From positions 124,001 through 188,000 of IMG/VR virus record IMGVR_UViG_3300009093_000035: DNA of 64,000 bases, one strand, 5' to 3'. Below the pieces are notes generated by a model that was given only the letters and a program-made list of their open reading frames with translations, was not told where the DNA came from and did no database searches. The stretch's first letter is position 1. Each line of letters begins with the position of its first letter. Positions 6,690 through 33,793 of the stretch are shown in pieces. Both the position numbers and the translations under genes were made by a program.

Positions 6690-6706
6690 ACGACGAAGTT
6701 ACGCCC

Positions 6707-6913
6707 TCACTGACCTTCGGGCGAAGGAACCGACCGTCCCTCGACGGTCGGACCCGAGACGGCTCCCGTCACCGGATCTCGGTTCAGGAAGAAAGTCGGC
6801 CGACCTTCCATATCGATGAAAGCGATCCAGGTCCGGTCTTCGGGCTCGATCCAGCCCTGCCAACCGCCGACCGCCACAGGATCCGAGTATCTCTTCACGA
6901 TGATGTTGTTCAC
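6707..6913 (-). CDS. Hypothetical protein
   Basis: 68 aa, GGAG SD before the GTG. Confidence 0.6.
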   Translation of the reverse strand: MNNIIVKRYSDPVAVGGWQGWIEPEDRTWIAFIDMEGRPTFFLNRDPVTGAVSGPTVEGRSVPSPEGQ

Positions 6914-7208
6914 GGGGATCTCCTAGTTGTGAGGAAGATCCACGAACATCCATCGTGGGTCGCTCGAACTGTACCCGCCTAGTCGGGCCTCTTCAAGTAG
7001 TAACGCCTGTGAACCCCGACCCCGTCAGAGGCGAGAATCTCCCCGCGCTTCCGAAGCCTCTCCAAGGACTCCGCGCAGAGCTTCCACCCCCAGACGCACT
7101 CCTTCCAGGAAGGTTGCTGGTCGAAGCTCAGGTACGGGTAGCTCTGGAGACACTTCAAGACGGACCGGTCGATGATTCGATCGACGGCTTCCGTCGCCTG
7201 CTCTCGCG

Positions 7209-7421
7209 TCAAGGGACCTCCGGGAAACTTCGGTTGTACAGCTCCAAGGCCTGAGTGAGGAGACGCTGCTTCCAGGACAAGTCGTCCTCGTCGGGAGCCT
7301 CCGCGGCGGCCTCGATCGCGGTCCGATTTGCGACGACCCAATTGAGAACGGCCTGGTACTTCGCCGCCCTCTCGGTCTGAATCAATCGAGCCGCGCGTTG
7401 GGTCCAGTGACGACTGCTCAT
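7209..7421 (-). CDS. Hypothetical protein
   Basis: 70 aa, helical; GGCGTAA upstream. Confidence 0.55.
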   Translation of the reverse strand: MSSRHWTQRAARLIQTERAAKYQAVLNWVVANRTAIEAAAEAPDEDDLSWKQRLLTQALELYNRSFPEVP

Positions 7422-7448
7422 GGCCTAGAAGGCCATTACGCCTTGAGG

Positions 7449-9173
7449 TCAGTAGCCGATCGCAGCGCGACGATTCGTGAAGAACGTCGACTGACCCGAG
7501 GTCGTGAGGTGGAGCCCGTCCCCGGCGAGATCACCGGTCGAGTACATCGACGCCCCGCTGATGATGGTGACGTTGACTCTCCCCACGGAGGCCACGGCGT
7601 TCGTCTGAGCCGTCACGAACTGAGCGAAGGTCTGGCCCAACCCGTTCGTCGAGATGTCCGTACGGGGACCGAGGGTCTGTACGAAGACGTGGGTGAAGTA
7701 GGGCGCGACGAGCGTCAGAAGCTGGGTGAGGGCTGTCTGGTAGTCGGAGACGAGAGCCCACTGAGAGAGGCCGAAGTCATTCGTTCAGATCTGGATCAGA
7801 AGCTCGTTCGTCACGGTCCCATCCGCGAGCGCGATCAACGCGTTCGCCATGGCGGTAACGGACGGGTATCGGATCGTGCTCAGCGTCTTCAGCGAGTAGA
7901 TACCCGCCGTCATCTCAGTCGTACGACCCGGGTAGGCATCGCGCGTGAGCATCGAAACGCCGTCGTTCTGGAAGAAGGCGGGGCTCGGGGATGCGTTCTG
8001 GCCGAGGTTGATCGAGTCGCCGATCTCGATGAGACGACGCGTCGGGGTACCCGGAGGCGCGAAGGTCATCGTGCGAGTCGGAGGAAGCCAGATCTGGGAA
8101 AGGTAGTTGCCCGCGTTCGGCGAAGGCGCTCGGTAGCTCTGGGGGCCGACTTCCAACTCGACCGTCTTCACAGTCCCGCCGGTTCCGAGTGAGATCAGGG
8201 GGTAGGCGATCGTCCCCACGTCCACGACGTTCTTCGATCCGCCGTTGATGCGGTAGGCGATCGTGTACTGGATCGTCGTGGTGACTGCGACGGTGAGAAG
8301 CTGGAACTCCTCGGCGTCGGTCGTGAAGAGAAGACGTGCGTACGAAGACGGGGCCTCGTACAGACCGGGGACCACGGTAGTCGGCTCCGTATCCACGTAG
8401 GGGACGCCGACGAGGAGCTGCTCGGTCGTACCGCTCGCCGCAGCGAGAAGCTGGGAGAGCTGAAGCTCGTCGGCGTCGCTCAGCTCCGCCGGGAACAGGA
8501 CGATGAACCGAACGGTCATCGCCGCGAAGGTTCCGGCCGAAGCGTTCACGCCTCCGAGAGCTACCGGCGTCGAGGGAACCACCAACCCGGCGACGCTCGT
8601 AGAGCCCCCGAGAAGGGACCCGAAGAGATCCGTTCCGTTCAGACGCTGGGGACGTACTGCGTTCACCCCGTTCGCGAACGTGCAGCGAGCGCTGTAGATA
8701 CCCCAGCCATCGCTGTACTTCGCGCTCTGGTACTCGTTGATGTTCGGACCGGTCTTCACCGCGATTGCGCCGACGTGAAGGCTGTTGCGGCAGTAGAGAC
8801 CGATGTAGTCGGTCGTACTACCCGCGTTCACCATGTACGACTCGATACCGCCGCCGGTCGCCTTCCCGACCATCACCATCGTGTAGCCGGCCGCGCTCGC
8901 GAAGAACCCGGTGGACCCCAACATCTTGTTGGCCACCCCGTCGAAGACCATGTTCGACCCGACGAGAGTCGGTCGAGCCGTCGTCCCGGTTCCTGCGGTG
9001 AACGCGGATCCTCCGGTACGAGGCGTCCACGACGTACACCTCTGGCCGGTCTCGAAGACCGTGCCGAACAAGGAGTCGAGTAGGATTCCGGACCGCGCCG
9101 AAACGAAGGCCGTGAGAGGGCCAATCGTGTTCTGAGCGGCCCTACCCGCGGCGAGGCCAGGACGGAACGCCAT
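7449..9173 (-). pseudogene. Lectin-like beta-sandwich plus SGNH/GDSL esterase, interrupted by one in-frame TGA at 7785-7787 (nonsense allele or readthrough)
   Basis: Block I IGDSI, block III IQI*TND and block V DGLH are all in one frame. The frame stays open for 111 codons after the TGA, to the stop at 7449. Confidence 0.75.
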
Positions 9174-19444: not shown

Positions 19445-20323
19445 TCATCGCGTGATCTGAAGACGAGCCAGGCCGCGGGGGTTGTAGGCCCCAATGCCAA
19501 GGTTCTCGAAGACAGAGAAGCCGATCGTGCGCGCCTTCGGGTCGTCCGCCGAGAGGACCGTCAGCTCGGTACGGACCGGGATCCGACCGAACATCTCGGG
19601 CTCGCAGCACACGTACACCGTGCCCACCGGAACGAGGCGGCTCGTGATGACCTGGGCGCCCCAGAGGGTCGCCTGGAGGCCGGTCTTGAGCAGCGTCGCC
19701 TGGGACTCGATGTCCAGGATGTCCCGACCGAACTTGCGGATGTCCTCGTAGTCCCGCGCGTTCATGTACACGCGCGCGACCCGGAGGTCGTGGCGCTCGA
19801 TGAGAGCGAAGGCGTCCGCGAGAACCGCACCGGTGATCGGAGCGACGACGGGGATGTCCGGGTTCAGCCCGCCCGGGAGCGAGTCGAAGCCGTTCACCGC
19901 GATCGCGTCCAGAACCGCGAAGACGCGCTCGTCCTCGGCAGCCTGGATCATCGCACGCGCCAGATCCTGGGCGCGCTCGATCAGATCGAAGCGACGCTCC
20001 TTGATCTGGGTGAGCGGGATCTCCGGGTTCGAGGCGATCTCGAACAGCGGGAAGATCACGCGGCGCGGCTTGGTGATGGCGAGGATGTTCTCGCCTTCCT
20101 CGCCGACCACGTACGCGGTGACGTCCGGGTCCTTGTCGTAGATCGGCAGCGCGCCGTCCGGCAGCTGCTCCACGAGGAAGGTCTTTCGACCGACGCTCAT
20201 GTAGTCGCGGCGCGTACGAAGCGGCTGCGTCATGGACGCAGCGAGCTTGTTGCGACCCGAAGCGGTCTTCAGGTAGTCGCTGATGATCTTCTGCTTGACA
20301 GCGTTGTTGACGTTGATGGTCAT
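19445..20323 (-). CDS. Major capsid protein (HK97 fold, Bxz1-like)
   Basis: LAASMTQPLR..DY..RK; PLFEIASNPEI...IQAAEDERVF resembles the mycobacteriophage Bxz1-type MCP; follows protease and scaffold; strongly biased codons. Confidence 0.9.
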   Translation of the reverse strand: MTINVNNAVKQKIISDYLKTASGRNKLAASMTQPLRTRRDYMSVGRKTFLVEQLPDGALPIYDKDPDVTAYVVGEEGENILAITKPRRVIFPLFEIASNPEIPLTQIKERRFDLIERAQDLARAMIQAAEDERVFAVLDAIAVNGFDSLPGGLNPDIPVVAPITGAVLADAFALIERHDLRVARVYMNARDYEDIRKFGRDILDIESQATLLKTGLQATLWGAQVITSRLVPVGTVYVCCEPEMFGRIPVRTELTVLSADDPKARTIGFSVFENLGIGAYNPRGLARLQITR

Positions 20324-20345: not shown

Positions 20346-21026
20346 TCAGACGCGCTGGTCGTAGACCAACTCGGTCATGACCGAGTCGGGGACCATGAGG
20401 AGAATGCCCAGAGTCCGGGACGCCGTGTGGCCGTTCGCGACTTCGATGGCCAGGCCAGCGACATCGAGCGAAAGGATCGCACCCGCGTTGTCCACCCAGC
20501 GCGGCATCAGGTAGCCGTTCAGGGAGGCGATGAGGTCCTGACCCGGCAGGTAGGCGAGGGGATCGCCAGCTGCGAAGGGCGCGACCGCTCCGAGGAACTG
20601 CGTCTCGTAGAGACGGTTGCCGTAGGAGCCCATGCCGGAGACGTACGGGCCCTTGTTCGACGCTGCCGCCGGAAGGTTCTCGTACGCGTTTCCCGACGCG
20701 TTGTTGATGAAGCAGCCGAGGGGCTGCGTGTTGTACGCGTTCACCGTCGACACGCCCGACACGGCAACGGTCACGGGACCGCCGACGAATGCCGAACCTG
20801 CGTCGGGTCGCGTGAACGCGATCGAGCCGGAGAGTACCCCGAACACTTCAGTGAGTGCTCCGGGCGAAGTGGACACCGTGGAGGGTGTCGTGACGATCGG
20901 CGGGTTGGTCTGACGGAAGGCGTCTGCCGTGAGAACCGCAAGGGAGTTACGAACTCCGATGTAGAGGATTCTCAGAGCCGAGGAGCTTTCCGTCCAACCA
21001 CCGCTCGCCTGTCCAAGCAACGACAT
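20346..21026 (-). CDS. Probable capsid decoration/cement protein
   Basis: Directly upstream of MCP; Ala/Gly/Val-rich beta protein with PLGCFINNA. Confidence 0.6.
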   Translation of the reverse strand: MSLLGQASGGWTESSSALRILYIGVRNSLAVLTADAFRQTNPPIVTTPSTVSTSPGALTEVFGVLSGSIAFTRPDAGSAFVGGPVTVAVSGVSTVNAYNTQPLGCFINNASGNAYENLPAAASNKGPYVSGMGSYGNRLYETQFLGAVAPFAAGDPLAYLPGQDLIASLNGYLMPRWVDNAGAILSLDVAGLAIEVANGHTASRTLGILLMVPDSVMTELVYDQRV

Positions 21027-21458: not shown

Positions 21459-22985
21459 TCAGCCGCCGAAGACCTTCGAGACGTCGGGGGACGTCTCCCA
21501 GAGCTTCGAGAGGTCCGCGATCTCGGCCGAAGCCGTACGCGAGTTCGAGGGAACCGAGCCGAGGGTGCGGGGACCGGTCGACGCGACGCGGGGCTGGGGC
21601 TTGACGGCGGCCTTCTTGGCCTCCTTCTTCGCCTCGTCCTCGTCGGACTTCTTCTCCTCGGCCTCGTCGTCCGCCTTCTTCTTCCCGGCGTAGCGACCAC
21701 CGTAGACGGCGGCCATCTCGTTCTCGCTGAGGCCACCCATCTCCGACGGGTCCATGAGAGCCATGGGGTCCTCGCCGAAGACGTCGTCCATCATCGGGTC
21801 CTCGTCCATGCCCGAGAGCATGTCGTTGACGTTGGCCTTCTTCTCCTCGCCCTCGGCCTCGTCCTCGGACTTCTTCTCTTCCTCGGCGTCGTCGTCGGCC
21901 TTCTTGGCCTCCTTCTTCGCCTCGTCGTCGTCCGAAGCCGTCTCCTCGTCGTCGTCGGCCTTCTTGGCCTCCTTCTTCTCGGAGTCGTCCTTCTTCTCGA
22001 AGGGGGGCGCCTTCTTCCCGCCGAAGGGCTCGTCCTTCTTCGCGGACTTGGCGGCCGAAGCCTTCTTCGACTCCTCCTCCATCATCTCCGCGAGCAGGGC
22101 TTCGTCCTCGTCCTCGTCTTCCGAGGCCTTCTTGTTCTTCCCGAGGTCCGAGCCCTCGTAGTTGTAGTGGGCGGGATCGTTCTGGTTGCCCGACGGAGCA
22201 GCGCGGCGACCCGAGGCCTTCTTCGCCTCCTTCTCGGTCTCCTCGTCCTCGTCCGCCTTCTTGGCTTCCTTCTCGGTCTCCTCTTCCTCTTCCTCGGCGG
22301 CCTTCTTCGCCTTCTTCGCGAAGTGGGCGGCGAGACGGGCGTACTTCGCAGCCTTCTTCGCCGCGACCTCCGCATCGTCCTCGTCTCCGTCCTCGTCGTC
22401 GGCCTTCTTGGCCTCCTTCTTGGACTCCTCTTCCTCTTCCTCGGCCTTCTTCGAAGCCGGGACCACGACGTCCTCGTCATCGACGATCATGTCGTCGGCG
22501 AGGAGATCGTCGGCCGAGCGCTCGGGCGTGAGCGTGTAGTTCGCGTCCTTCCCGCCGAGACGGGCGAGAGCGGCGGCGATCTGACGATCACCGAGCGACA
22601 TGAGGTCGAGGGCCTGGTCCTCGATCGCGTCCACGGACGCGTTCTTCGGAAGCATCGACGTCGCGATGCGGATGCACTTCGCGGCCTTCTGCGTCATCGC
22701 AGCGCGGAGCTGGCGGCTGGCCGCCTTCGACCCGCTCGGGAAGTAGTGGGCCGGATCCGTCGCCGGGTGACCCTGGGGCTCCTGCATGCCGGGGTCGGCC
22801 GGAGCGGGCGTGTTCGGGTAGGGACCCGGGTGCGGATCCTCGGCCCACGACGACGGATCGCCGTTCATGTACTTGTCCGCGTCCGGGTCGGGGCCGGGCC
22901 ACGCGGGGTGGTTGGTGCCTTCGGCGTAGCCCGGGGTAGCCGGGGGTGCAGAAGCCTTGCGATCGGTCGTTCGGCGGCGCGTCAT
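21459..22985 (-). CDS. Probable capsid scaffolding protein
   Basis: Between protease and capsid genes; acidic/Lys low-complexity EAKKADDE repeats. Confidence 0.7.
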   Translation of the reverse strand: MTRRRTTDRKASAPPATPGYAEGTNHPAWPGPDPDADKYMNGDPSSWAEDPHPGPYPNTPAPADPGMQEPQGHPATDPAHYFPSGSKAASRQLRAAMTQKAAKCIRIATSMLPKNASVDAIEDQALDLMSLGDRQIAAALARLGGKDANYTLTPERSADDLLADDMIVDDEDVVVPASKKAEEEEEESKKEAKKADDEDGDEDDAEVAAKKAAKYARLAAHFAKKAKKAAEEEEEETEKEAKKADEDEETEKEAKKASGRRAAPSGNQNDPAHYNYEGSDLGKNKKASEDEDEDEALLAEMMEEESKKASAAKSAKKDEPFGGKKAPPFEKKDDSEKKEAKKADDDEETASDDDEAKKEAKKADDDAEEEKKSEDEAEGEEKKANVNDMLSGMDEDPMMDDVFGEDPMALMDPSEMGGLSENEMAAVYGGRYAGKKKADDEAEEKKSDEDEAKKEAKKAAVKPQPRVASTGPRTLGSVPSNSRTASAEIADLSKLWETSPDVSKVFGG

Positions 22986-24427
22986 GTCAGTCTCTCCTTG
23001 TGGGCACGAGTTTCGGCGGTTCGCCGAGCGGTAGGAAGATCCGCCAACAGGGTTGCCAACCGAACCATCGTGTTGACTTCCTCGTTGGAGGGAGCGTGGC
23101 CGAGAGCTTTCTTCACGGCCTTCAAGAAATGAGCCGGTTCCCGATACAAATCTCGGGCTCCAACCTTTAGCGCAGCCCTATAGATTGAAACGGGAAGCAA
23201 AACGCCGATTTCCCGATTCAGGGTTGCAACACGGTTGATCAGTTCGACGTCCGAGGTAGACGTCGCCACCAGGGTACGGAGCGACGCCACGTAGGCGGCC
23301 CTCTTCCCGGCGAGGCGAGCCTGCTTCACGACGGTGTCATTCGGAGCGTCCGAAGGCGGCAGGACCTGGTCCTCGACCTTCTTCTTCGTCAACTCTTCCT
23401 TCAGCTGGTCCTTCACGCCGTCGAGGACGACCGACTTCAGCTCGTTCTCGATCCCACCCAGCGGGGACTCCGAGGGGCCCTTCTTCGGCGGAGCCATCTC
23501 CTCTTCTGGAGCGGCTTCCTCTTCCTCAGGAGCGTCCTCGAACCCGCCGGTGCGGGCGGCCTTCTTCCGGGCGTTCGGATCCGCGACCGGAGCCGGGGAG
23601 GCGAAGACCTTCTCGGCCGCCTTCTTCTTCCCGCTGTCGATCTCCACGACGTTTCGAGCGACGGCGCCCGTGAACGCGGGGGTCTCTACCCAGGAAGCCT
23701 CGACGAAGGTAACGCCGCCGGTCGGGTCGAGAGACTCGTCCCCACACAGCTCAGCGACCCGGTGCTTCCCACCGTTCTCGTCGTAGAAGACGTTGCCCTT
23801 CTCGTAGCGAATGTGATCGCAGAACTCGGTCTCGTCCGCCGCCCAGTGACCGCACTTTGTGCAGGTCGAGCCGTCGATCGAGCACCCCATCGAGAGAGTC
23901 GAAAGCTCCCCTGAGGCGATCTTCGCGCAGAGGTCTTCGTGCTTCCGGTCGTTCGCGACGAGGATGTCCACGTAGATCGAGTCGCCGACGTCGCGGGCTA
24001 CCGCATCGATGATGCGACCCTTCGAGAGCTTCTCGATCTGGACGTGCTCCACGAAGGAGTGTCCCCCGACGAAGGTCTTGTACGACTTCAGAAGGACCGG
24101 ACGGGCCCAGGAGTCGAGGTTGTTGTTGATGTACTTGTCGCAGGCGCTCTTGATCCGGAAGTTCGTCGTCTTCCGGACGATCTTCTTCCCGTCCTCCGTA
24201 GAGGAACCCAGCTTCGCCTTCGGGACCTTCTCGGTATCCACCGAGGCCACGATCGTAGCATGGGTGAGGAGGAACTTCTTCGGGTCGAAGTCCGACTGAA
24301 GGATCTTCGAGGCCTGGTCGATGATATCTCGCCCGGCCTTGAGCGAACCCGACGCCACCCTCACCCGGTCCCAGTCTCGGACGTGGGGAGTAACGTTGAT
24401 GCTACGGGCGTAGCGAAGGAAAGCCAT
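22982..24427 (-). CDS. Prohead (capsid maturation) protease
   Basis: NNNLDSW..YKTF..FVEH, SMGC (catalytic Ser), CTKCG..CDH zinc insert, FVEASWVETPAF. Confidence 0.85.
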   Translation of the reverse strand: MAFLRYARSINVTPHVRDWDRVRVASGSLKAGRDIIDQASKILQSDFDPKKFLLTHATIVASVDTEKVPKAKLGSSTEDGKKIVRKTTNFRIKSACDKYINNNLDSWARPVLLKSYKTFVGGHSFVEHVQIEKLSKGRIIDAVARDVGDSIYVDILVANDRKHEDLCAKIASGELSTLSMGCSIDGSTCTKCGHWAADETEFCDHIRYEKGNVFYDENGGKHRVAELCGDESLDPTGGVTFVEASWVETPAFTGAVARNVVEIDSGKKKAAEKVFASPAPVADPNARKKAARTGGFEDAPEEEEAAPEEEMAPPKKGPSESPLGGIENELKSVVLDGVKDQLKEELTKKKVEDQVLPPSDAPNDTVVKQARLAGKRAAYVASLRTLVATSTSDVELINRVATLNREIGVLLPVSIYRAALKVGARDLYREPAHFLKAVKKALGHAPSNEEVNTMVRLATLLADLPTARRTAETRAHKERLT

Positions 24428-25036
24428 TCAGGCCCCCTCAGCGCCGATGATGTCGCCTCGGCGGATCATGAAGAGACAGTCCCCACAGCAGTAGAGCTTC
24501 TCGTTCTTCCCGTCCTCGCGCTTGTAGATCACCTTTCGGAGTTCCACACCGTCGCAACGAGGACACGTCGGGACCCCCGAGTCCATCTCTCCCCGGTTCA
24601 TCCGGTACTTGCGGTCCGGAGAATCCCAGTAGAGGGCCTTCTTCACGAAGGCCTCGATCACTCGGTCGGTGCTCGCGTCGCGATACAGCTCGTCGTTCGT
24701 GAGGTCCTCTCGGACGTCCTTCGCGAGCGTATCCGGACCGCCGGAGACCGACACCGTCGGAGTCCCGCCTGGGATCGAGTCAGCCTGGAAGTCGGCGAAG
24801 TTCTCGAACGTGTCGGACTGGTCGATCACCAAGTCTTCCACCGGGTACCGAGTCGAACCGTACCCGAACTGGACATCCACCATGCCGATCGCAGGCCACA
24901 CGGCAATCACCGTCCCCCCTGCAGCGGGATTACCGCCAAGCATGGGGAACACCCTATCGCCCGGTGAGAACACCGAGGCGCGGGCTTGGTAGTCGACGTA
25001 GGTCGCCCTGCGATCGGACAAGGTGGTCTCCTTCAC
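24428..25036 (-). CDS. Head-cluster protein (SH3-like N-terminus, C-terminal zinc ribbon)
   Basis: PGDRV..GTVIAVWPAIGMVDVQF; CPRC...CGDC. Confidence 0.7.
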   Translation of the reverse strand: MKETTLSDRRATYVDYQARASVFSPGDRVFPMLGGNPAAGGTVIAVWPAIGMVDVQFGYGSTRYPVEDLVIDQSDTFENFADFQADSIPGGTPTVSVSGGPDTLAKDVREDLTNDELYRDASTDRVIEAFVKKALYWDSPDRKYRMNRGEMDSGVPTCPRCDGVELRKVIYKREDGKNEKLYCCGDCLFMIRRGDIIGAEGA

Positions 25037-25641
25037 TTCGAGTCGGCGAACAGACCGAAGAGCGAAGCCGTCTTCTTGGCCTCCTCCTCGTCGGAGGCGA
25101 CCTCCTCTTCGTCACCGTCGTCGTCGGCCTTCTTGGCCTCCTTCTTCGGCTCCTCTTCGGACTTCTTCTCGTCCTCTTCCTCGGCAGCCTTCTTCGCGGC
25201 AGCCTTGCGGTTCGCGAGGTCCCACTCCTTCAGCTGCTCGAAGGCGATGACGGCAGCCGTCTTCGCGATCAGCGAGGCGAGCTTCGGGTCGGCGCGATGA
25301 GCCGCCGCGTTCCCCGCGAGGCTTCCGCTCAGCTGCTTCTCGGCGAGCTGGGTGAACTTCGCCTGGGTGAAGTGGCCGTTCATGAACGGGTTGTTCGCGT
25401 CCATGATCATCGGACCGGGGACGCCCTCGCCGATCTGGGCGGGGTTGTAGTAGCCGGCCGTCTTCAGCCCGAAGTTCCGATCGATCGCCGCCGAGAGGAG
25501 ATCGCAGCGGTGCGCGAAATCCGCCGCGACCTTCGCGGGGATCCCGAGCGACACTGCGTGACTCTCGAAGAGAGACGCGATGTTGTCCAGGGAAGCGGTG
25601 ACACGACGAGCACCCATCATCGAAGCCTTACGCACGGTCAT
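25033..25641 (-). CDS. Head-cluster protein with scaffold-like acidic tail
   Basis: GGAGG SD; KKEAKKADDD stretch like the scaffold; several KxA motifs. Confidence 0.75.
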   Translation of the reverse strand: MTVRKASMMGARRVTASLDNIASLFESHAVSLGIPAKVAADFAHRCDLLSAAIDRNFGLKTAGYYNPAQIGEGVPGPMIMDANNPFMNGHFTQAKFTQLAEKQLSGSLAGNAAAHRADPKLASLIAKTAAVIAFEQLKEWDLANRKAAAKKAAEEEDEKKSEEEPKKEAKKADDDGDEEEVASDEEEAKKTASLFGLFADSK

Positions 25642-25737
25642 GAATTCCTCCAGGTGTAGGCTCGTTGAAGGGGTCGGAGCCTTGGTTGGGTGCTACAGTA
25701 CACCCTACCTTCTCGCCCCCGCAATAAGCAAACTATC

Positions 25738-28700
25738 CTACCAATTCCACTCCAGGGACGAAGTCTTGTTGGAAGACCCCGTATCGATGTCCAAATCCAC
25801 CAAGTCCCCGATCGCATCCTGTACCTGGGACTCGTAAGGAGCCTTCTCTTCCGACTCGGACGAATCGCCCGGACCGGAGAAATCGGTGGGCTTCGACCTC
25901 GAAGGAGCCTTCTCCCGACGCATCTCGGTAAGAGGCTCTCTCTCGGAAGCCGCGTCTTCTACAGCTACGTTCGTGAGAAGCTCGGTGAAGACGTCGTGAG
26001 CGTTGCGGACGCGCTCCCGCTGAGACGCCTTCAATCCAGAGAAGGGCCAGACGTAGTCGGCCTCATCCTCAGAGTCTTCCCCGTCGTAGATCTTCCGCCA
26101 AGACGCCGCGAGCTTCCCGCTCGGGTCTACCGCCTCCAGCGCCTTCTCCATCTGCTCCGGTTGAAGCTTCCGGACCATGTCAGAGACGACTTCGGCAGAA
26201 GGCTCGGAACCGGGAACTCCCAACCCGGCCTCAATCATGTCGGAGACGTCTACACCGCTCTCCTTCAAAGACCGAAGCATCGTCCTCGTCCCCGTAGGAA
26301 TCGAAGACTCTGAGTCGTCGTCGCCCTCTAGGGCCGACGAAAGCTCCAAGGCTCGATGGTCGGCGGCGAGGTACCCCATCCGGTTCCGGAGCTGTTCCAG
26401 TTCCTTCTGGTCCGCCTCGCGCTCTTCGGGAGACTGGGGCGCTCCGCTGTTGGAGGAGAGCTTCTCTTCGAGGTCCGAGATCTTGTCCTGAGTATCCGTT
26501 CGAACCCGGGCGAAGGTCTTCTTCGTCTCAGCCCGATCGTCCGGAGACATCCCATCGAACCGCTCGACCGTCTTCGAGGTTCGCTCCTTCACCCCGGCCT
26601 TATCGATCGGAGACGAGGTGTCTCCGATGTAGGTCATCGGGTTACGGGCTGCCTCAGCCGTAGCCGCATGAACGAAGAACTTCGAGAAGCTCGACTGGAG
26701 TTCCTTCTCCACCTGGTCGCGCTTCTCGGTGAGCTGGAGGATCCGATCACCTTGGGTCTTCGCGAAGCTCCGCTTCAACCCCTCGATCTCGTCGTTGAGG
26801 TCTTCGTACTTCGACTTCAGCTTCTCGATCTTCTCTGGGGACGGGGGCTTCTTCGTCGAAGGGGAGTTCCCCGCGGCCATCCTACCGATCGCTTCGTCGC
26901 GATCTGCCGTCAGCTTCTCTACGAACTTCTCGGCGTCCTCGGTCGTCATCTGCTCGGTCAGAGAATCGAGCGTCGACTTCACGAAACGTGAGTCCTCCTT
27001 CGAGAAAGCCGGGGAGTCCTTCACGGACTGGGCCTTCTGATGGATCTCCGAGCGGCGGCGCTTATCCAGCTCCTCCGCCTCGTCCCTCTTGTACTGAGCC
27101 TCTTCCTCAGCGTCCGCGTCCTCTTGCTGCTTCTTCGGGTCGGGAGGCGCCTCCCCGGACTCAGGCTTCGGTTCTGGCTTTGGGGGCTTCGGAGGAAGGC
27201 CCTTCAGATCTCTCTTCCGGGCCTCTTCCTGCTCGCGCTTCTTCTTCCGAAGCTTGTCTTCCTTCGAGCCCTCTTCTTCGAACTCCTTCGCCTTCTCGGC
27301 CCACTCGGCGCGGATCCGCTTCTGTTCCTCGTCCGGGAGACTCTGGAACTTCACGTCTTTGTTGGTCTCTTTGTTGTGGAAGGTCTTCCCCTCCACGGAC
27401 TCCAGGAATTCGTCATCCTCTTCTGAGTCCAAGGCCAACAAGTACCGAGAGGCCACGCGACTCGGGGCCGTCATGAAGTAGGCCATCGCTACTCGAAGGG
27501 CGACCTTCTTGTAGTTCAGGGAGAGATCGTCGTCGGTGGCGTCGAGGTCCTTGTCCCCCGAGTCCACCCGGTGGTTCTGGAGATCTTTCCGAGGGGGCTT
27601 CTTCTTCGGCTCCGGCTTCAGAAGAGCTTCCGTCGCCTCGTCTTCCTTCTCTGCTTCGGTCTTCGTGGCGGACTTCGACTCCTTGAAGGAAGAGAGGATC
27701 GTCCCATCCTTCATGAAGGCGTCTTCGAGACCGGGGACCAGGTAGTCCGAACGAAGGGTCGCCTTCTCGTGGCCGACGATGTCCGCGACCTCTTCGAGGG
27801 CGTCCGCGAACTCCTTCTTCAGGATCTTGTCCCGCTCCTTCCGAGCGCGTGGGAGATCCGGGCCCTCTTTCCGCTGTTCGCGGAGGGCCTTGCACATCTC
27901 CTGATTCGCTCGGAGCCCGCGGATGTCCTTCGCGGTGATGTCGAACTCGCTGAGGTAGTCGTTCACCGCCTCCGGCTTCACCGTGTAGTCGTCCCGGCTG
28001 AGCAGGCAATCGTCGCCCTTCTTCCCCTCAGCCAGCTCCTTCAGGAGCTTCACGACCGGAGCCGACTCGACCACCTTCTCGTGCTTCACGCCGGACTTTC
28101 CGACGTACTTCAGGGTCGCTTTCGACCCAGAGAACGAGATGTGCTTCTTACGCCACCCCGTCACCCCGTAGTGGCCTTCTTCGGCCGACCCCTCATTCCC
28201 TACCCGCTCGCACGTCTCGTCCATCAGAGCGGCGGCGAGGGCGGGGAGAGCTACCTTCGGGTCCTTCGAAGAGATGTCCTTCTTGATCATCTTCCGAAGG
28301 TCGCTGAGGTCCTTCCGAAGACGTTCGATCCGTTCGGCCTTCTCCGAGTGCCGGTTCGCTACCTGGCGATCGCTGTACTCGTAGTGGACATTCCCCTCGT
28401 CGTCCTTCGTCTTGGACTTGTACCGAGCCGCTACGACAACGGCCGAGGCCAGTCTCGCGGAAAGGGGCGGGGGACAATCGACGTCATGACGAGCGACCGT
28501 AACCAGGTGGGGGACGCAAGACCTACCGTTCGACTCGATCCAGTCGGCGAACGTGCGTAGGTGGCCCAGGCGGTCTTCCCAGATCGCCACGCCTCGGATC
28601 GAAGGCTGCTTCGAGAGGATCTTCTTGATCGTCTCCAGCTTGAATCTCTCGGTATCCGTGTCTCCGGGGGACAGGTAGATCTCCTGGAAGTCGAGACCGG

Positions 28701-28974
28701 CCTGGCGAAGGAGCTGACGGATCCGAAGCGAGAACTTCTGGACTCGACCCGTGAGAAGGATCGTCCGAACCTCTACGTTCTCCAACGACTGCTTCGCGCG
28801 CTCGACGACCGATTCGTTCCACCAATCGATCGTGGGCTCCTCCGGCACGCAAGGCGTCGAGAGGGAGTTGAGGTCGCCCCACCACTCCGCCCCTTCTTTC
28901 CACCAGATGGGAGGCTCCGGACTCTTGAAGAGAGTCCCATCGAAGTCGTAGACGTGAAGCTTGATAGGCCTCAT
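25738..28974 (-). CDS. Fusion of HAD phosphatase (Swiss-army-knife RNA-repair type), DNA topoisomerase IB core and a long acidic helical region
   Basis: HAD: YDFDGTLF, LLTGR, K, WEDR. TopIB pentad: ERVGNE, VGKSG, KDIRG, VGHE, RSDYL. Confidence 0.85.
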   Translation of the reverse strand: MRPIKLHVYDFDGTLFKSPEPPIWWKEGAEWWGDLNSLSTPCVPEEPTIDWWNESVVERAKQSLENVEVRTILLTGRVQKFSLRIRQLLRQAGLDFQEIYLSPGDTDTERFKLETIKKILSKQPSIRGVAIWEDRLGHLRTFADWIESNGRSCVPHLVTVARHDVDCPPPLSARLASAVVVAARYKSKTKDDEGNVHYEYSDRQVANRHSEKAERIERLRKDLSDLRKMIKKDISSKDPKVALPALAAALMDETCERVGNEGSAEEGHYGVTGWRKKHISFSGSKATLKYVGKSGVKHEKVVESAPVVKLLKELAEGKKGDDCLLSRDDYTVKPEAVNDYLSEFDITAKDIRGLRANQEMCKALREQRKEGPDLPRARKERDKILKKEFADALEEVADIVGHEKATLRSDYLVPGLEDAFMKDGTILSSFKESKSATKTEAEKEDEATEALLKPEPKKKPPRKDLQNHRVDSGDKDLDATDDDLSLNYKKVALRVAMAYFMTAPSRVASRYLLALDSEEDDEFLESVEGKTFHNKETNKDVKFQSLPDEEQKRIRAEWAEKAKEFEEEGSKEDKLRKKKREQEEARKRDLKGLPPKPPKPEPKPESGEAPPDPKKQQEDADAEEEAQYKRDEAEELDKRRRSEIHQKAQSVKDSPAFSKEDSRFVKSTLDSLTEQMTTEDAEKFVEKLTADRDEAIGRMAAGNSPSTKKPPSPEKIEKLKSKYEDLNDEIEGLKRSFAKTQGDRILQLTEKRDQVEKELQSSFSKFFVHAATAEAARNPMTYIGDTSSPIDKAGVKERTSKTVERFDGMSPDDRAETKKTFARVRTDTQDKISDLEEKLSSNSGAPQSPEEREADQKELEQLRNRMGYLAADHRALELSSALEGDDDSESSIPTGTRTMLRSLKESGVDVSDMIEAGLGVPGSEPSAEVVSDMVRKLQPEQMEKALEAVDPSGKLAASWRKIYDGEDSEDEADYVWPFSGLKASQRERVRNAHDVFTELLTNVAVEDAASEREPLTEMRREKAPSRSKPTDFSGPGDSSESEEKAPYESQVQDAIGDLVDLDIDTGSSNKTSSLEWNW

Positions 28975-28977
28975 TCG

Positions 28978-29442
28978 TCAGCCTTCGTGAGAAGCCGTGT
29001 GGGCCCTCTTCCGAACCAGGGCGAGGTCTGCAACGTGAGAAGCAAGGGAGATCCGACCCTCGGGCGAGGCCAACCGACTCGCCTCGGTCATCTCCCGAAG
29101 GTCGAAACACTCCGGGGCGAAGTCCTTCCGGATGTCCCGAAGCGCCTGGGCGATCTCCCGAGGGTCTTCCTCGTCGATCCACCTCTCCTGAAGGTCGCGA
29201 ACGAAGTCCGCCTTCCCTTCGAGTAGGGACTCCCACTTCTGCTTCGTATCGAGGGAGAGGGCCTCCTCGAAGAGGGCTTCGATCGTGAGGAAGTGCTTCC
29301 GGATACAGTCATGACAGCGCTTCCGCTCGTTGTTGAGGTGATCCTCCAAGAGCGCGCACTGCTTGCAGATCTCCCTCAGGTTGAAGAGGGGGTGCATGAT
29401 CGGAAGAAGGTCTTCCGTGGCGATGATGCGTCGGCGGTTCAA
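28978..29442 (-). CDS. Hypothetical protein (C..CIRKH); start probably the TTG at 29442
   Basis: Late motif CGGT-N7-CTAT at 29472-29486 overlaps the track's start codon. Confidence 0.65.
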   Translation of the reverse strand: MNRRRIIATEDLLPIMHPLFNLREICKQCALLEDHLNNERKRCHDCIRKHFLTIEALFEEALSLDTKQKWESLLEGKADFVRDLQERWIDEEDPREIAQALRDIRKDFAPECFDLREMTEASRLASPEGRISLASHVADLALVRKRAHTASHEG

Positions 29443-29491
29443 GTCCAGATCCGTCCTAAGCCCCGGCGGCCATAGGCTCAGCACCGGGGTG

Positions 29492-31273
29492 TTAGAACCG
29501 ACTCTCTTCCTTATCCGTGGGCTTCGTGTACTTCAGGTTGAGCCTCTTCGCGAGGATCTCGTTGAAGTCGCTGTTCTCGACGAGCTGACGCCCCGCTTCC
29601 CCGTACATCGTTCCGATCAGGTCGTTGAACTTCGAGTCGTTCACCGTGAACATGTCTCGGGTCAACTTCTCCTTCGTCGAGTGGGGGTCGATGTTGAGAA
29701 GTTCGAGGATGATGTCGATGTCGAGGGAGCCCTTCTGGTAGAGGTTGAAGAGCGCGTCGAAGGTGTCGGCGTTGTCTCGAAGCGCGAGACGCGTGAACGA
29801 GAGACCGGGAACGATGATGTTCTCGTTCCCGTCGTCGTCCTCCTCGACGAAGCCCATGCGCTTACACATCGGCTTCAGGAGATTGTTCTCGATCATGTCC
29901 TGAAGGATCTCTCGGAGGAGCATGTACCGAGTGTTGATCACTTCGAGGTTGATTCGGTCGCCGGAGTAGCTCGACTCACCGGAGAGGAGTGACTCGGTCA
30001 CGCCGAGACCCGCGTACATCTGACGATCCGTCATCTCGTACTCGCCCGAGAGTTCGAGGAGGCGCTGCTGGCTCCCCATCTCTTCCCAGTGGAGTTCGAA
30101 GTTCGTGATGATCGAGTAGTCCGGGTCCATGAGGGCCAGGTCGACCTGCTCGCGGATCGCGTCCACGTCGGCGATGCTGGCGTCTTCGGCCCAGATCACC
30201 CGGATCGGGGTCATGTGACGAGAGGCGATAGACGTCTGAGCCTGGCGGAGCTTGTCGCGGTAGACGAGGATCCGAAGGCACCGCTCCAGGAGCGAGTGGC
30301 CGCGGGGCTCGTACTGAGACTTCTTCCGGGCCATGTAGTAGACGAAGGACCCGGCGTCCGGATTCGTGTTCAGGGGGATGTTCTGGCCGCTGCGGATCGA
30401 CTCCACGACCGACGGGGGCATCGACTCCACAACCCGTTGCGCGTGCTCGTCTCCGGAGTCGGCCCTCTGAATCACGTCCTTCGTCTTCGAGTCCGCGATC
30501 AGCTCGATCAGCTTCTCGTCCGTGAAGGGGAAGCCCTCCATGTGGACCTGTTCCGGAGGAAGGACGCGAAGGGCGGTCCAGCCCTTGTAGTTCTTCCGGA
30601 GCCAGCGACTCGTCCTCTCGGCCCAGTCGGATCGACGCCGCTTCTCCTCGACTGGATGGCCGGAAACGTCGATCTCCCGGATCATCTCGAACTCGATGTC
30701 TTCGGGCATGTCCGGGGAGTTGTCCTCCGCGAACACGTAGACCTCGCCCAGAAGGTTGTACTCGTGGACGATCTCGATCAGACGATGGAGGAGCCCGATC
30801 TCCTTCGCCCACTTCGTACAGAAGTTCAGCGAGGCCTCGGCGATGTCCCTGTTCTTCGCCTCGGGCTTCCGGAGACGGATCTTCGAGAGAGGAAGCTCCG
30901 TGTGGAGATCGACAGCCTGGCCTACGAACGGATCCGCCCCATAGAAGAAGCGGTAGTAGTTCCGCTTCTCGTCCGCCGATTGGGGTAGTTCGAGGAAGTC
31001 GGTCGAAAGCTCGGGGCTGTAGAAGTTACCCCCGCTCGCCGACGCGACACCGCCCGTAGCCGGGAAAGCAACCTTGGAGCGGAGGGCGCTCGTGATCACT
31101 CGCTTCGGAGGACCCGTTTCTACGTTCGCCTTCTTCGCGATCCGTCGGACCTCGACCGCCTCCTGAGACTCCCGAGTCGTGCGGCGATTGTCGGCCGCCA
31201 CGACCTTCCCCTTTTTGGGGATCCGTCGGACTTCCAATCCGTCCTGATTCTGGGTCTGCTTACGAGTAGGCAT
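29492..31273 (-). CDS. Portal protein
   Basis: 593 aa downstream of TerL; RFFY..DPFVGQAVDLHTELPLS, RGHSLLERC, GLGV...LSGESSYS. Confidence 0.85.
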   Translation of the reverse strand: MPTRKQTQNQDGLEVRRIPKKGKVVAADNRRTTRESQEAVEVRRIAKKANVETGPPKRVITSALRSKVAFPATGGVASASGGNFYSPELSTDFLELPQSADEKRNYYRFFYGADPFVGQAVDLHTELPLSKIRLRKPEAKNRDIAEASLNFCTKWAKEIGLLHRLIEIVHEYNLLGEVYVFAEDNSPDMPEDIEFEMIREIDVSGHPVEEKRRRSDWAERTSRWLRKNYKGWTALRVLPPEQVHMEGFPFTDEKLIELIADSKTKDVIQRADSGDEHAQRVVESMPPSVVESIRSGQNIPLNTNPDAGSFVYYMARKKSQYEPRGHSLLERCLRILVYRDKLRQAQTSIASRHMTPIRVIWAEDASIADVDAIREQVDLALMDPDYSIITNFELHWEEMGSQQRLLELSGEYEMTDRQMYAGLGVTESLLSGESSYSGDRINLEVINTRYMLLREILQDMIENNLLKPMCKRMGFVEEDDDGNENIIVPGLSFTRLALRDNADTFDALFNLYQKGSLDIDIILELLNIDPHSTKEKLTRDMFTVNDSKFNDLIGTMYGEAGRQLVENSDFNEILAKRLNLKYTKPTDKEESRF

Positions 31274-31694: not shown

Positions 31695-31949
31695 TCAATC
31701 CCAAGAGGGAGTCTTCGTCAGGTACCCGTTCTTGTAGGCTATCTTGATGATCTTCTTCAGGAGCCGGACCTGGTCGATGTCTCCGTCGAAGACCCCCTCC
31801 CAGCTTCCTTCAGCGCGATCGAAGACCCGAACAATCAGGTCGTACTCCTCCGGAAGATGGACGACCTTGTACATCGCCTCCAGGATCTTCTTGATGATCC
31901 TGTAGTCGGCTCTCACCGGTACCAACGGGTCGTTCTTCGCAGTCTTCAC
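31695..31949 (-). CDS. Hypothetical protein
   Basis: GTGA overlap with the TerL stop. Confidence 0.6.
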   Translation of the reverse strand: MKTAKNDPLVPVRADYRIIKKILEAMYKVVHLPEEYDLIVRVFDRAEGSWEGVFDGDIDQVRLLKKIIKIAYKNGYLTKTPSWD

Positions 31950-33793
31950 CGAATCGGCCTTCCCCTACCCAAAGACACTCCGCGAGGAACCATCCGAGAT
32001 TCGACGCTTCCGCTTCTCAGGAGTCTCCGACGAGAGAGCCCTACGTTAGAGCCGAACCCTGACGAACTACCGAGAGGGAGCCCGGTTCGGGTGAGATGGG
32101 GTTGTTTCAGGAGGCGATTCGAGGCGAGCCACACCATTCGGACGAGAGCGTCCGACATGTCGTCGTGCTTCCCTTCGATGTTTGGGGCTTCGACTGTAGT
32201 GATGTACTTCGAGTGATACCGGGCCTGGAGTTCGAGAAGCTCCTTGATGTAGGCGCAGTGCTCTTCGTGGGCTTCCTTCGGCCAGTCGTAGAGACCTAGC
32301 CGGTTGTCCCACAACATCGACTTGAAGTTCTGGAAGATCTGGGACGTCAACGGCTTCGTCATGACGACCGACTTCAGCTGGGTGAGACCCCGCTTCTTCA
32401 GCGCCTGTTCGAAGGGGATACCAGTCCACTGGTCGAAGATCCCGTCGATCACATAGAACTTGTTACACCACTCCTTCACCCAATCGGCTACGTCGTCGAA
32501 GTCGAGGCGATCCACATCCTCGTACTTCCCTTCACCAGCCTTGATCTGATCGACCATATCGACCAAGATCTTCCCCTTCTCATCGATGTGGCCGAGCGAG
32601 ATCGCCGTCGCGTCTCCCTTGAGCGCCAAGTCGATTCCCATGAAGTAGGGACGACGGGGCATCCCTCGAACCTGGGGTCGGAGAACAGGGTTGATACACT
32701 TCGTGAGGTCGGTCTTGTCTTCGATCCAACCGCGAGTACGGTCCGTGAACTCGCCGCCGTACTCCGTGAAGAAGACCGTGGAGTCCTTCAAGTAGTGCTT
32801 CTCGAACTCCGTCGCCGGAATCGTCGGGTTCACTTCCCAGGTCGGAGCCTGGATACAGAGCATGGTGTCGGAGACCGAGCCTCCGCCCATACCCATCTGG
32901 AAGAGCTTGTAGAACAAGCCCTGACGACCCAAAGGGGACGAGATCAGGATCACGCGGGCTTCGACCGACCCGATAGAGACTCGCGAGTTCGTCGGATCCT
33001 TCGGCGAGAAAGCCGAGGTCGAGGGGACGACGGCGTTGTAGACGGCGTCGGCCGAGGATTGGCCAGCGTCGGTGAAGTGGGCCACCTCGTCGAGGATGAC
33101 AACGATGTTACCGGAACCACGAAGACCCTTCGCGATACAGGACCGGAAGGTGACTCGGATCGAGGCCTTCGCGTTCTTGTTCTCTGAGTAGGGGCCGTAC
33201 TTCTCAACGTCCTTCGGCGACTGGAATCGCGCGTAAGACATCGTGTTGTTCGCCATGTACGGCATGAAGAAGTCGCAGTTACGGAAGTGGCCGGAGACCT
33301 CCTGGTAGAGGATGCCCGCCTGGTCCTTGTCCGTAGCGACCGAGATCAGCTGGATAGCGTTCGAGGGAGGGAGACCGTAGTAGGCCTGGGGGTCACCCTT
33401 CGAAATCAGCTTGTAGGTCTCGTAGGCAGCGATACAGGCCGAGATCGTGGTCTTACCGGAGCGGCGGCCGATCGAAAGGATCATCTCCCGCCGGTCGTGG
33501 CCAGCGGTCACCTCTTTGATCGAGGAGCGACCCTCTTTGAAGAGGTACTCCAGGTACTCCTTCTCCGTGAACTCCAGGAACTTCTGACGGCGCCAGTCGG
33601 AGATCTTGAACTTGACCTTGTCGTCTAGCTCGATCCCGTAATGGGCCTTCAGGATGACCTTTTGGACCGGGAAGAGCTTCATGTTGAGCCCCCAGGGCTC
33701 TTCGATGAACTCGATCGGTCCTACGACCTGTTTCTTCTTGGTAATCGAGGAAACGGCACGAGCGCCCGCGAGGGCTATGTTTCCCAGACTCAA
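31946..33793 (-). CDS. terL: Terminase large subunit
   Basis: Q motif PVQ, Walker A GRRSGKT, Walker B VVILDE, ISSP coupling motif, nuclease GIDLA and HDDMSDA. Confidence 0.95.
   Translation of the reverse strand: MSLGNIALAGARAVSSITKKKQVVGPIEFIEEPWGLNMKLFPVQKVILKAHYGIELDDKVKFKISDWRRQKFLEFTEKEYLEYLFKEGRSSIKEVTAGHDRREMILSIGRRSGKTTISACIAAYETYKLISKGDPQAYYGLPPSNAIQLISVATDKDQAGILYQEVSGHFRNCDFFMPYMANNTMSYARFQSPKDVEKYGPYSENKNAKASIRVTFRSCIAKGLRGSGNIVVILDEVAHFTDAGQSSADAVYNAVVPSTSAFSPKDPTNSRVSIGSVEARVILISSPLGRQGLFYKLFQMGMGGGSVSDTMLCIQAPTWEVNPTIPATEFEKHYLKDSTVFFTEYGGEFTDRTRGWIEDKTDLTKCINPVLRPQVRGMPRRPYFMGIDLALKGDATAISLGHIDEKGKILVDMVDQIKAGEGKYEDVDRLDFDDVADWVKEWCNKFYVIDGIFDQWTGIPFEQALKKRGLTQLKSVVMTKPLTSQIFQNFKSMLWDNRLGLYDWPKEAHEEHCAYIKELLELQARYHSKYITTVEAPNIEGKHDDMSDALVRMVWLASNRLLKQPHLTRTGLPLGSSSGFGSNVGLSRRRLLRSGSVESRMVPRGVSLGRGRPIR

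Follow-up and report, generated by a model that had tools for sequence, protein, structure and literature searches.

A type IB topoisomerase core fused to a T4 Pnkp-like phosphatase domain in the capsid-assembly block of an uncultivated huge phage

A single open reading frame in the virus record IMGVR_UViG_3300009093_000035 encodes a type IB topoisomerase (TopIB) that lies between a portal and a prohead protease and is fused to a phosphatase domain. We analyzed a 64,000-nucleotide window of this record (positions 124,001 to 188,000), which is a 248.6 kb fragment of a rhizosphere phage with an estimated completeness of 56% and whose nearest deposited relative is the 485 kb LR745208.1. The original prediction held that a HAD phosphatase of the RNA-repair type is joined here to a TopIB core with all five catalytic residues and about 600 aa of acidic helical sequence, and that the product is packaged in the virion, processed by the protease, and acts in DNA packaging, ejection, or early transcription. 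Our analysis confirms the observation itself, while the interpretation built on it is supported only in part.

To determine the composition of the gene, we examined the reading frame at 25738-28974 (minus strand), which is uninterrupted and encodes a protein of 1078 aa (P0001). Pfam profile searches identified HAD_SAK_1 (PF10307) at aa 29-153 (75.7 bits against a cut-off of 25.6; 5.7e-21) and Topoisom_I (PF01028) at aa 208-406 (90.5 bits against a cut-off of 23.7; 1.4e-25), in agreement with the boundaries originally predicted. The TopIB core spans aa 185-436 (27667-28422, minus strand) and contains the residues R257, K293, R352, H402, and Y411, which align with R130, K167, R223, H265, and Y274 of variola TopIB and are invariant in 121 homologues. 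The HAD domain spans aa 1-170 (28465-28974, minus strand), and its motif residues D10, D12, and T14 of the DxDxT motif, T75, K112, and E133 are each conserved in at least 95% of 43 HAD copies. No 5'-OH polynucleotide kinase domain was found in P0001 by searches of Pfam, PHROGs, or NCBIfam, although there was a weak PHROG match to polynucleotide kinase, and a sequence search of the PDB with the HAD domain alone returned no match.

To better assess these assignments, an AlphaFold2 model of P0001 was generated (mean pLDDT 82) and compared with solved structures. The TopIB part best matches Deinococcus radiodurans TopIB (PDB 3m4a, Z 22.5, rmsd 1.9 Å over 216 residues; 2f4q is from the same species), followed by variola TopIB (2h7f, Z 22.2), while integrases score lower (Z of 13 or less); Foldseek also recovered the fold (1.7e-10). 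Sequence alignments begin only at residues 62-68 of the poxviral and bacterial enzymes (residue ~62 for variola), and the structural alignment reaches variola residue 16 but at 6.2 Å rmsd. The model has only a helix and a beta-hairpin (aa 171-200), whose residues Y198 and Y200 are conserved, before the catalytic domain, suggesting that little more than the hairpin stands in place of the poxviral N-terminal domain. The HAD part is closest to Pnkp1 of the Pnkp1/Rnl/Hen1 RNA repair complex (Z 15.2), the T4 Pnkp 3'-phosphatase (Z 15.0), and T4 PNK (Z 14.2), all above the other HADs (Z of 12.9 or less). The predicted similarity of this domain to polynucleotide 3'-phosphatases is thus upheld.

We next examined the remaining ~640 aa, which are acidic (net charge about -38) and helical as originally described, but which are composite rather than uniform. 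Immediately after the TopIB core lies a linear motif of ~90 aa that is strongly conserved across the family (aa 437-525; 27400-27666, minus strand; ATKT..EKEDE..PKKKPPRxDL..DLSLNYK..RVAxRYL) and is modelled with low pLDDT. This is followed by a small beta/helix element and a low-complexity, charged, proline-rich linker (aa 526-640; 27055-27399, minus strand), with pLDDT below 50 at aa 568-610, and then by a confidently modelled helical domain of ~430 aa (aa 641-1065; 25780-27054, minus strand). As this tail is 37-53% identical in close relatives, to which its conservation is limited, and folds confidently in the model, it cannot be dismissed as low-complexity filler. Searches with it of BFVD, the PDB (VIA wide), and the ESM Atlas by shape and by features gave only generic helical hairpins or nothing. 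To test whether the linear motif could be a general capsid-targeting signal shared by other proteins of this phage, all six frames of the 248 kb were searched with an HMM, which found the motif only once. In the one complex prediction performed, the motif did not dock on the major capsid protein (MCP) or on the TopIB core, a result that counts neither for nor against binding.

P0001 lies in a run of genes on the minus strand bounded by the terminase large subunit TerL (31946-33793; phrog_2 and phrog_9) and the MCP (19445-20323; phrog_2522, 4.3e-49; 84-97% identical across 29 loci). Upstream are the portal (29492-31273; phrog_16240, 4.7e-32) and a conserved small gene, w168 (28978-29484), that ends 3 nt from P0001. 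Downstream are the conserved genes w202b (25033-25641) and w202a (24428-25036), a prohead (head maturation) protease (22982-24427; phrog_18299, 5.4e-16), w508 (21459-22985), which has conserved ends and a variable middle and is a scaffold candidate by position only, and w226 (20346-21026), a conserved gene just upstream of the MCP. The proteins w168, w202a, w202b, w508, and w226 had no match in PHROGs and, even at lenient thresholds, none in Pfam, the PDB, or NCBIfam, and as the protease likewise had no match in Pfam, the PDB, or NCBIfam, its assignment rests on PHROGs alone. The position between portal and protease, in the head block, is therefore as originally predicted.

To establish how widespread this arrangement is, homologues of the TopIB core were collected, yielding 3324 cluster representatives at E≤1e-3 and 641 at E≤1e-30 (clusters at 50% identity), in which the core sits at variable positions in proteins of 238-3381 aa. 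The TopIB core plus motif defines a family of at least 641 clusters that is phage-specific: only 3 MAG contigs among 185,579 species genomes carry it, and only one of 50,697 deposited phage records carries this clade. We did not find the family in the papers searched, which did not include the Burroughs and Aravind RNA-repair paper that defined HAD_SAK. Of 80 IMG/VR loci, 43 read portal-TopIB-protease, 14 read TerL-TopIB-portal with a stand-alone TopIB, and 15 more have head genes on one side, such that 72 of 80 lie in the head module, while 8 have no head gene within 10 kb. PHROG searches of the neighbours of these eight loci were uninformative, and a minimal 285 aa form sits near RNase HII and a methyltransferase.

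Whether relatives exchange domains at this locus had been put forward as a test of the prediction, and we found that they do so extensively. The domains fused to the TopIB core include HAD, 2H cyclic phosphodiesterase, PAP2, CCA-adding enzyme, and RNA ligase, as well as GNAT, SOD, Ham1, GGACT, and InPase, in more than 80 architectures among 293 proteins. A 2792 aa relative (P0142) carries RNA ligase, CCA-adding enzyme, HAD, 2H, and TopIB and lies in the same slot. On a tree of 289 TopIB proteins, HAD changes at least 21 times and 2H at least 25 times, whereas the motif, present in 223 of the 289, changes only about 10 times. Gene fusion and fission with neighbouring genes was also observed: HAD is a separate upstream gene at loci L017-L020, L077, L078, and L086, w202b forms the C-terminal domain of the TopIB protein in many relatives, w168 is fused into it in some, and w202a is fused to the protease at locus L006.

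We next compared P0001 with previously described systems. Poxvirus TopIB (vaccinia and variola, 314 aa) is a compact viral enzyme with the same fold and pentad that is carried in the virion, where it helps early transcription, but it is only about 21-23% identical and lacks the fused phosphatase, motif, and helical domain and the tailed-phage head-module setting seen here. Bacterial TopIB is a stand-alone cellular protein, whereas the clade described here is essentially absent from cellular genomes. The HAD family was described as usually stand-alone in jumbo phages (PMC7824862), while here it is fused to a topoisomerase. Phage polyvalent proteins (Iyer et al. 2017, PMC5512222), which include MuF or portal fusions to 2H, InPase, and other domains, similarly join unrelated enzymatic domains that recombine among homologues beside portal and terminase genes, and 2H and InPase recur in both. 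TopIB is, however, not among the domains named in that paper, the add-ons here are dominated by RNA-end repair enzymes, and no MuF, portal, or MPTase peptidase domain, a frequent rather than strictly defining feature of the class, was detected in P0001 or among the domains tallied. P0001 likewise has no Pfam or PHROG match to the Phage_Mu_F domain of the SPP1 gp7/Mu F minor head protein, the usual gene after the portal. TopIB genes have been noted in the cultured jumbo phages phiRSL1, Lu11, PaBG, Motura, and NCTB (PMC7824862), and we found that the TopIB protein of Xanthomonas phage PhiXhv-15 is also long (668 aa) and encoded 2.7 kb from a head-tail connector gene. These proteins are at most 28% identical to the clade here (E-values from 2e-6 to about 1), the motif, HAD, and 2H were not seen in PhiXhv-15, and the PaBG paper lists its topoisomerases among DNA replication and processing genes. 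Finally, T4 offers a positional analogy, as gp67 and gp68 are encoded between portal gp20 and protease gp21, and the IPs and Alt (the latter as described in PMC5512222) are delivered with the DNA, but no sequence or structural similarity and no T4-type capsid-targeting sequence were found. BLASTP revealed no similarity between P0001 and gp8, the post-portal 'minor tail protein' of the distant cultured relative Tunturi_5, and phage G was too distant to be of help.

Taken together, we consider it somewhat more likely than not that P0001 is a combinatorial, polyvalent head-module protein, of a clade of uncultivated huge phages, that is carried in the capsid. In this view, the protein would be made late with the head genes, be built into the prohead next to or joined with w168, w202b, and w202a, possibly be trimmed by the prohead protease, and enter the cell with the DNA. 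There the topoisomerase, predicted to be ATP- and Mg-independent, would relieve torsional stress on the very long incoming or first-transcribed genome, while the phosphatase would remove 3'-phosphates arising from RNA or tRNA cut by host defence nucleases, or from dead-end breaks that TopIB itself makes at ribonucleotides. The heavy investment of the phage in tRNA (45 tRNAs, a tmRNA, and separate genes for a CCA-adding enzyme and an RNA ligase), the lack of any other topoisomerase in the 248 kb fragment, and the precedent of poxviruses, which package TopIB in the virion, also speak for this view. Our analysis establishes the identity of the domains, the integrity of their active sites, the conserved head-module position, and the repeated exchange, fusion, and fission of domains; in the absence of a cultured member or a proteome for this clade, packaging, processing, delivery, substrates, and both enzymatic activities are inferred, the first two from gene position and gene fusions only. 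As the w genes lack recognizable homology, the argument that fusion to them marks a prohead component rests on position, and position near head genes is not proof of a structural role, since replication genes lie between TerL and portal in Tunturi_5. The eight loci outside any recognizable head module, and the lack of a processing peptidase domain or known capsid-targeting sequence in P0001, also weigh against this view. The chemical link originally drawn between the 3'-phosphotyrosine intermediate of TopIB and the HAD domain is loose, as a HAD phosphatase removes 3'-phosphate monoesters and not phosphotyrosyl adducts, and the 2H, PAP2, CCA-adding, and RNA ligase partners point to RNA or tRNA 3'-end repair at least as much as to DNA.

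A possible but less likely alternative is that the protein is expressed late but works beside the head rather than inside it, with TopIB acting as a swivel on the concatemer or at the terminase-portal motor while 400-500 kb is driven into the capsid, and the HAD domain cleaning 3'-phosphate nicks so that the DNA entering is intact. This would be consistent with the 14 loci in which a stand-alone TopIB lies directly between TerL and portal, with the tight packing of the gene with portal and w168 on one strand, with the lack of any other topoisomerase in the 248 kb fragment, and with the independence of TopIB enzymes from ATP and Mg. However, it does not explain the recurrent fusion to CCA-adding enzymes, RNA ligase, and 2H domains, the fusion of w202b and w168 into the same polypeptide, or the fast-changing architecture typical of conflict proteins.

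A second alternative, which we consider unlikely, is that the TopIB core itself acts on RNA or RNA-DNA junctions as a site-specific RNase or strand transferase that makes or uses 2',3'-cyclic phosphate and 5'-OH ends, in one pathway with its fused partners, for example in repair or processing of the phage's own large tRNA set. Three unrelated phosphoesterase folds (HAD, 2H, and PAP2), the CCA-adding enzyme, and an RNA ligase have all been joined to this TopIB many times, the HAD domain is closest to RNA-repair Pnkp phosphatases, TopIB generates 2',3'-cyclic phosphate ends at ribonucleotides (Sekiguchi and Shuman 1997, as cited in PMC3964908), and the phage encodes 45 tRNAs, a tmRNA, and separate genes for a CCA-adding enzyme and an RNA ligase. 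In contrast, the DNA-contacting hairpin tyrosines and the full DNA-relaxing pentad are conserved as in DNA topoisomerases, no RNA-binding domain was detected, partners such as GNAT, SOD, Ham1, GGACT, and InPase do not fit a single RNA pathway, and no natural TopIB is known to work on RNA as its main substrate. In its boldest form, also unlikely but not excluded, the tyrosine-transesterase would not be a DNA swivel but the catalytic heart of a capsid-delivered RNA or tRNA repair machine that defeats host tRNA-cleaving defences from the first seconds of infection. Lastly, although the gene in the nearest deposited relative encodes only a 508 aa HAD-TopIB-motif protein without the tail, and one apparent stand-alone tail protein exists (P0149, which starts 27 nt from a contig end and is probably a truncated call), an assembly chimera, read-through, or decaying pseudogene is contradicted by a 44 kb contig from a second assembler that spans 25500-29500 with no differences, by pieces from two other runs that bridge both domain junctions without indels, by six or more independent clusters with the same HAD-TopIB-motif-tail order at 44-73% identity, and by the intact catalytic residues.

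If the protein is carried in the capsid, it would be, to our knowledge, the first topoisomerase shown to be delivered by a tailed phage, which would parallel poxvirus cores and point to how 400-500 kb genomes cope with torsion at entry without host energy. The strongly conserved PKKKPPRxD peptide is a candidate targeting or docking signal, and the recurrent fusion of TopIB to phosphoesterases gives a concrete handle on the fate of the 2',3'-cyclic-phosphate breaks made by TopIB at ribonucleotides, which was called 'entirely uncharted' in PMC3964908. Independently of packaging, the family is a large and rapidly recombining set of predicted RNA-end-repair modules, comprising 3'-phosphatase, cyclic phosphodiesterase, CCA-adding enzyme, and RNA ligase, tied to one constant enzyme and one conserved peptide, which is a strong hint that huge phages meet RNA- or tRNA-cleaving host defences at the very start of infection.

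The window covers bases 124001-188000 of a 248,579 bp IMG/VR virus record, which is rated 56% complete by CheckV, so the phage genome is roughly 440 kb, and its G+C content is about 61% throughout. Window positions 25738-28974 on the minus strand form a single ORF encoding a protein of 1078 aa, here termed P0001. Pfam placed HAD_SAK_1 at aa 29-153 (5.7e-21) and the catalytic core of a type IB topoisomerase (TopIB) at aa 208-406 (1.4e-25), while a PHROGs search returned only a weak match of the N-terminus to polynucleotide kinase. Alignment to solved TopIBs identified R257, K293, R352, H402, and Y411 as the catalytic pentad, and all five residues are invariant in an alignment of 121 homologues. 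Similarly, the HAD motifs D10-x-D12-x-T14, T75, K112, and E133 are conserved in 43 copies of the domain. To better assess the two domains, an AlphaFold2 model was generated from 51 sequences, with a mean pLDDT of 82. The TopIB part of this model matches Deinococcus radiodurans TopIB at Z 22.5 (rmsd 1.9 A) and variola TopIB at Z 22.2, while the HAD part matches best Pnkp1 (Z 15.2) and the T4 Pnkp 3'-phosphatase (Z 15.0), both of which stand above all other HAD structures. In front of the catalytic domain the modelled TopIB has only a helix and a beta-hairpin with conserved Y198 and Y200, where the pox and bacterial enzymes have a whole N-terminal domain.

The remainder of the protein had been described in the original prediction as about 600 aa of acidic helical sequence, which is correct as a description, as its net charge is about -38 and the model is almost all helix. 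We found, however, that it has three distinct parts. Residues 437-525 form a linear motif, ATKT..EKEDE..PKKKPPRxDL..DLSLNYK..RVAxRYL, in which P-P-R-x-D is invariant; this segment is modelled with low confidence and is probably unstructured alone. Residues 526-640 comprise a small element followed by a charged, proline-rich, disordered linker. Residues 641-1065 form a predicted all-helical domain that is confidently modelled, with pLDDT mostly above 90 in the full model, and that is 37-53% identical in the closest relatives. Structural searches of BFVD, PDB, and the ESM Atlas returned no informative neighbour for this domain.

To exclude that the gene is a product of assembly, we next examined independent contigs. 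A 44 kb contig made by a different assembler from the probable source run covers window positions 25500-29500 with no differences, and contigs from two other rhizosphere runs bridge the HAD-TopIB junction (28184-28566) and the TopIB-motif-tail junction (27001-27699) without indels. The same HAD-TopIB-motif-tail order occurs in at least six other protein clusters from other samples, one of which lies on two contigs from different samples. The fusion of a HAD phosphatase domain to a catalytically complete TopIB core between portal and protease, as originally proposed, is thus confirmed.

The genes surrounding P0001 all lie on the minus strand and are tightly spaced, with gaps of 3-8 nt around the gene upstream, in the order TerL (31946-33793), w131, portal (29492-31273), w168, P0001, w202b, w202a, head maturation protease (22982-24427), w508, w226, and MCP (19445-20323). 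The named functions were assigned using PHROGs, whereas searches with the small genes, which carry our own w designations, gave no match anywhere. The only deposited relative is the 485 kb metagenomic phage LR745208.1, which has the same gene order but whose gene encodes a 508 aa HAD-TopIB-motif protein without the tail. In LR745208.1 and its near copies (L001 13526-16285; L022 and L023, where L numbers denote our viral loci) the w202b-like gene is duplicated, and the copies share a conserved N-terminal stretch of about 50 aa. The major capsid protein, comparing the window's gene with the matching genes in L013-L087, is 84-97% identical across 29 loci, while portal, TerL, and TopIB from such loci are far less alike, which reflects unusually strong constraint, or recent spread, of the capsid gene. 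Inteins (Intein_splicing, LAGLIDADG, and Hint hits) or doubled gene lengths occur in TerL, in portal-sized genes, and in the prohead protease of many relatives (L004, L006, L007, L017, L018, L021, L034, L045, and L047), whereas the window's own copies are intein-free.

To determine how widely this protein is distributed, we scanned 1.84 billion cluster representatives, which revealed 3324 relatives at E<=1e-3 and 641 at E<=1e-30, with the TopIB core sitting anywhere within proteins of 238 to 3381 aa. The clade is phage-specific. Pattern scans found it on 165 IMG/VR stretches, many on contigs of 200-536 kb, while only three MAG contigs among 185,579 prokaryotic species genomes carry it, and the TopIBs of cultured jumbo phages are at most 28% identical. 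The sources of the clade are rhizosphere and peat samples, and binned MAGs hint at Actinomycetota hosts. One such cultured phage, the 228 kb Xanthomonas phage PhiXhv-15 (L100; PV764602.1), encodes at 6104-8110 a 668 aa protein with a TopIB core at aa 307-515, lying 2.7 kb upstream of a gene annotated as head-tail connector, and is a possible experimental proxy. ORFs were then called in 80 viral loci and labelled with iterated profiles built from the window's proteins. Of these, 43 loci read portal-TopIB-protease, 14 read TerL-TopIB-portal, 15 are cut but show head genes on one side, and 8 show no head gene within 10 kb. In the TerL-TopIB-portal variant the TopIB is a stand-alone protein of about 350 aa, and the motif then sits at the N-terminus of a separate protein right after the portal; the motif belongs to the post-portal slot as much as to the topoisomerase.

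Whether relatives swap domains at this locus had been proposed as a check on the original prediction, and this analysis gave the clearest result. Partner domains identified by Pfam and PHROGs include HAD_SAK_1, 2H phosphoesterases (PF13563, PF02834, PF10469, and PF08302), PAP2 phosphatase, PolyA_pol/CCA-adding tRNA nucleotidyltransferase, Rnl2-type RNA ligase, InPase, Ham1, GNAT, GGACT/ChaC, Fe/Mn superoxide dismutase, and DUF5661. Among 32 proteins from head-module loci, 9 matched the main 2H family PF13563, with smaller numbers matching the related 2H families PF02834 (4), PF10469 (2), and PF08302 (1), although these matches may fall in the same proteins; seven had PAP2 and seven a CCA-adding domain. 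One 2792 aa protein strings RNA ligase, CCA-adding enzyme, HAD, 2H, w168, TopIB, and motif together, and lies between portal and MCP. Our own labelling gave more than 80 architectures in 293 distinct proteins. On a TopIB-core tree of 289 proteins, parsimony requires at least 21 changes for HAD, 25 for 2H, and 13 for CCA, but only about 10 for the motif, which is present in 223 of them, although fragmentary proteins and tree error inflate these counts somewhat. HAD is a separate gene just upstream of the TopIB gene in several loci, the w202b and w168 proteins are often fused into the TopIB protein, and the w202a protein is fused to the protease in one locus. In a close relative (P0003; L003 10001-12589) an insert of about 360 aa with no Pfam match lies between the HAD and TopIB domains, while at L077 (8510-10804), L078, and L086 the TopIB gene is split into two ORFs (230 aa and 290 aa) about 735 nt apart, which may be due to an intron or a homing-endonuclease insertion.

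By the computational tests available, P0001 contains a true TopIB and a true HAD_SAK/Pnkp-type phosphatase. It is not a bifunctional Pnkp, as it has no kinase domain, nor is it a MuF/gp7 protein. It does match the pattern of the polyvalent proteins described for phages and conjugative elements, with a constant core, combinatorial enzymatic add-ons, a position between portal and protease, and fusions with neighbouring module genes, but it lacks that class's usual carrier or peptidase domains, and TopIB is not among the domains named in the paper describing them (PMC5512222). TopIBs have been noted previously in the jumbo phages phiRSL1, Lu11, PaBG, Motura, and NCTB (PMC7824862), with the PaBG paper listing its topoisomerases among DNA replication and processing genes, and the same review describes the SAK-type HAD of jumbo phages as usually stand-alone. 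No paper we could search, including a 2026 review of jumbo phages, describes a TopIB-cored, head-module, RNA-repair-decorated family or a virion topoisomerase in phages, although prior mention in the paper that defined HAD_SAK cannot be excluded. The finding is a variant of the polyvalent phage proteins and phage TopIBs already described, in a family that is large and shows a clean pattern.

Several members of the polyvalent class are known or thought to be packaged and injected (PMC5512222), and we therefore think, with modest confidence, that P0001 is built into the prohead and enters the cell with the DNA. The original prediction of a virion-packaged, protease-processed topoisomerase and end-healing enzyme is partly supported: the domain identities, intact catalytic residues, head-module position, and repeated domain swapping were established by the analysis, while packaging, processing, delivery, substrate, and the relaxation and 3'-phosphatase activities themselves are inferred. 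Gene position should not be over-read, as a distant cultured relative, Tunturi_5, has replication genes between TerL and portal, and eight loci lie outside any recognisable head module, as does a minimal 285 aa TopIB of the same clade (L012 10001-10858), which lacks the motif and is near a D12 methyltransferase, RNase HII, and a GT4-conflict glycosyltransferase. A possible but less likely alternative is that the protein is a non-packaged helper of DNA packaging or maturation, which is supported by the TerL-TopIB-portal variant and by the absence of any other topoisomerase in the 248 kb of sequence, where searches found no type IA or type II enzyme. We consider it doubtful that the TopIB is truly RNA-directed and works in one pathway with its partners. 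An artefact is very unlikely given the independent contigs and clusters.

In the reading that we favour, the topoisomerase, which needs neither ATP nor Mg, could relieve torsion on the incoming or first-transcribed genome, while the Pnkp-like HAD would remove 3'-phosphates. Two sources of such ends are plausible, one being RNA or tRNA cut by host defence nucleases, and the other being breaks with 2',3'-cyclic phosphate that TopIB itself creates at embedded ribonucleotides (Sekiguchi and Shuman 1997, as cited in PMC3964908). Within the 248 kb, a stand-alone Rnl2-type RNA ligase and an RNase HII are present (positions 105567-106172 and 233556-234101 of the phage's own contig), but no 2H phosphoesterase was found. 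Starting 442 nt beyond window position 64000, at 188442-199553 of the same contig, lies a dense array of 44 tRNA genes plus a tmRNA (tag ANDSSYDQLAQAA), all on the minus strand, with one more tRNA-Met further on at 224337-224412 and a PolyA_pol/CCA-adding gene next to the array at 201310-201777. This investment of the phage in tRNA, comprising 45 tRNAs, a tmRNA, and stand-alone genes for a CCA-adding enzyme and an RNA ligase, fits the first source, in which the phosphatase would act on the ends of RNA or tRNA cleaved by host defences.
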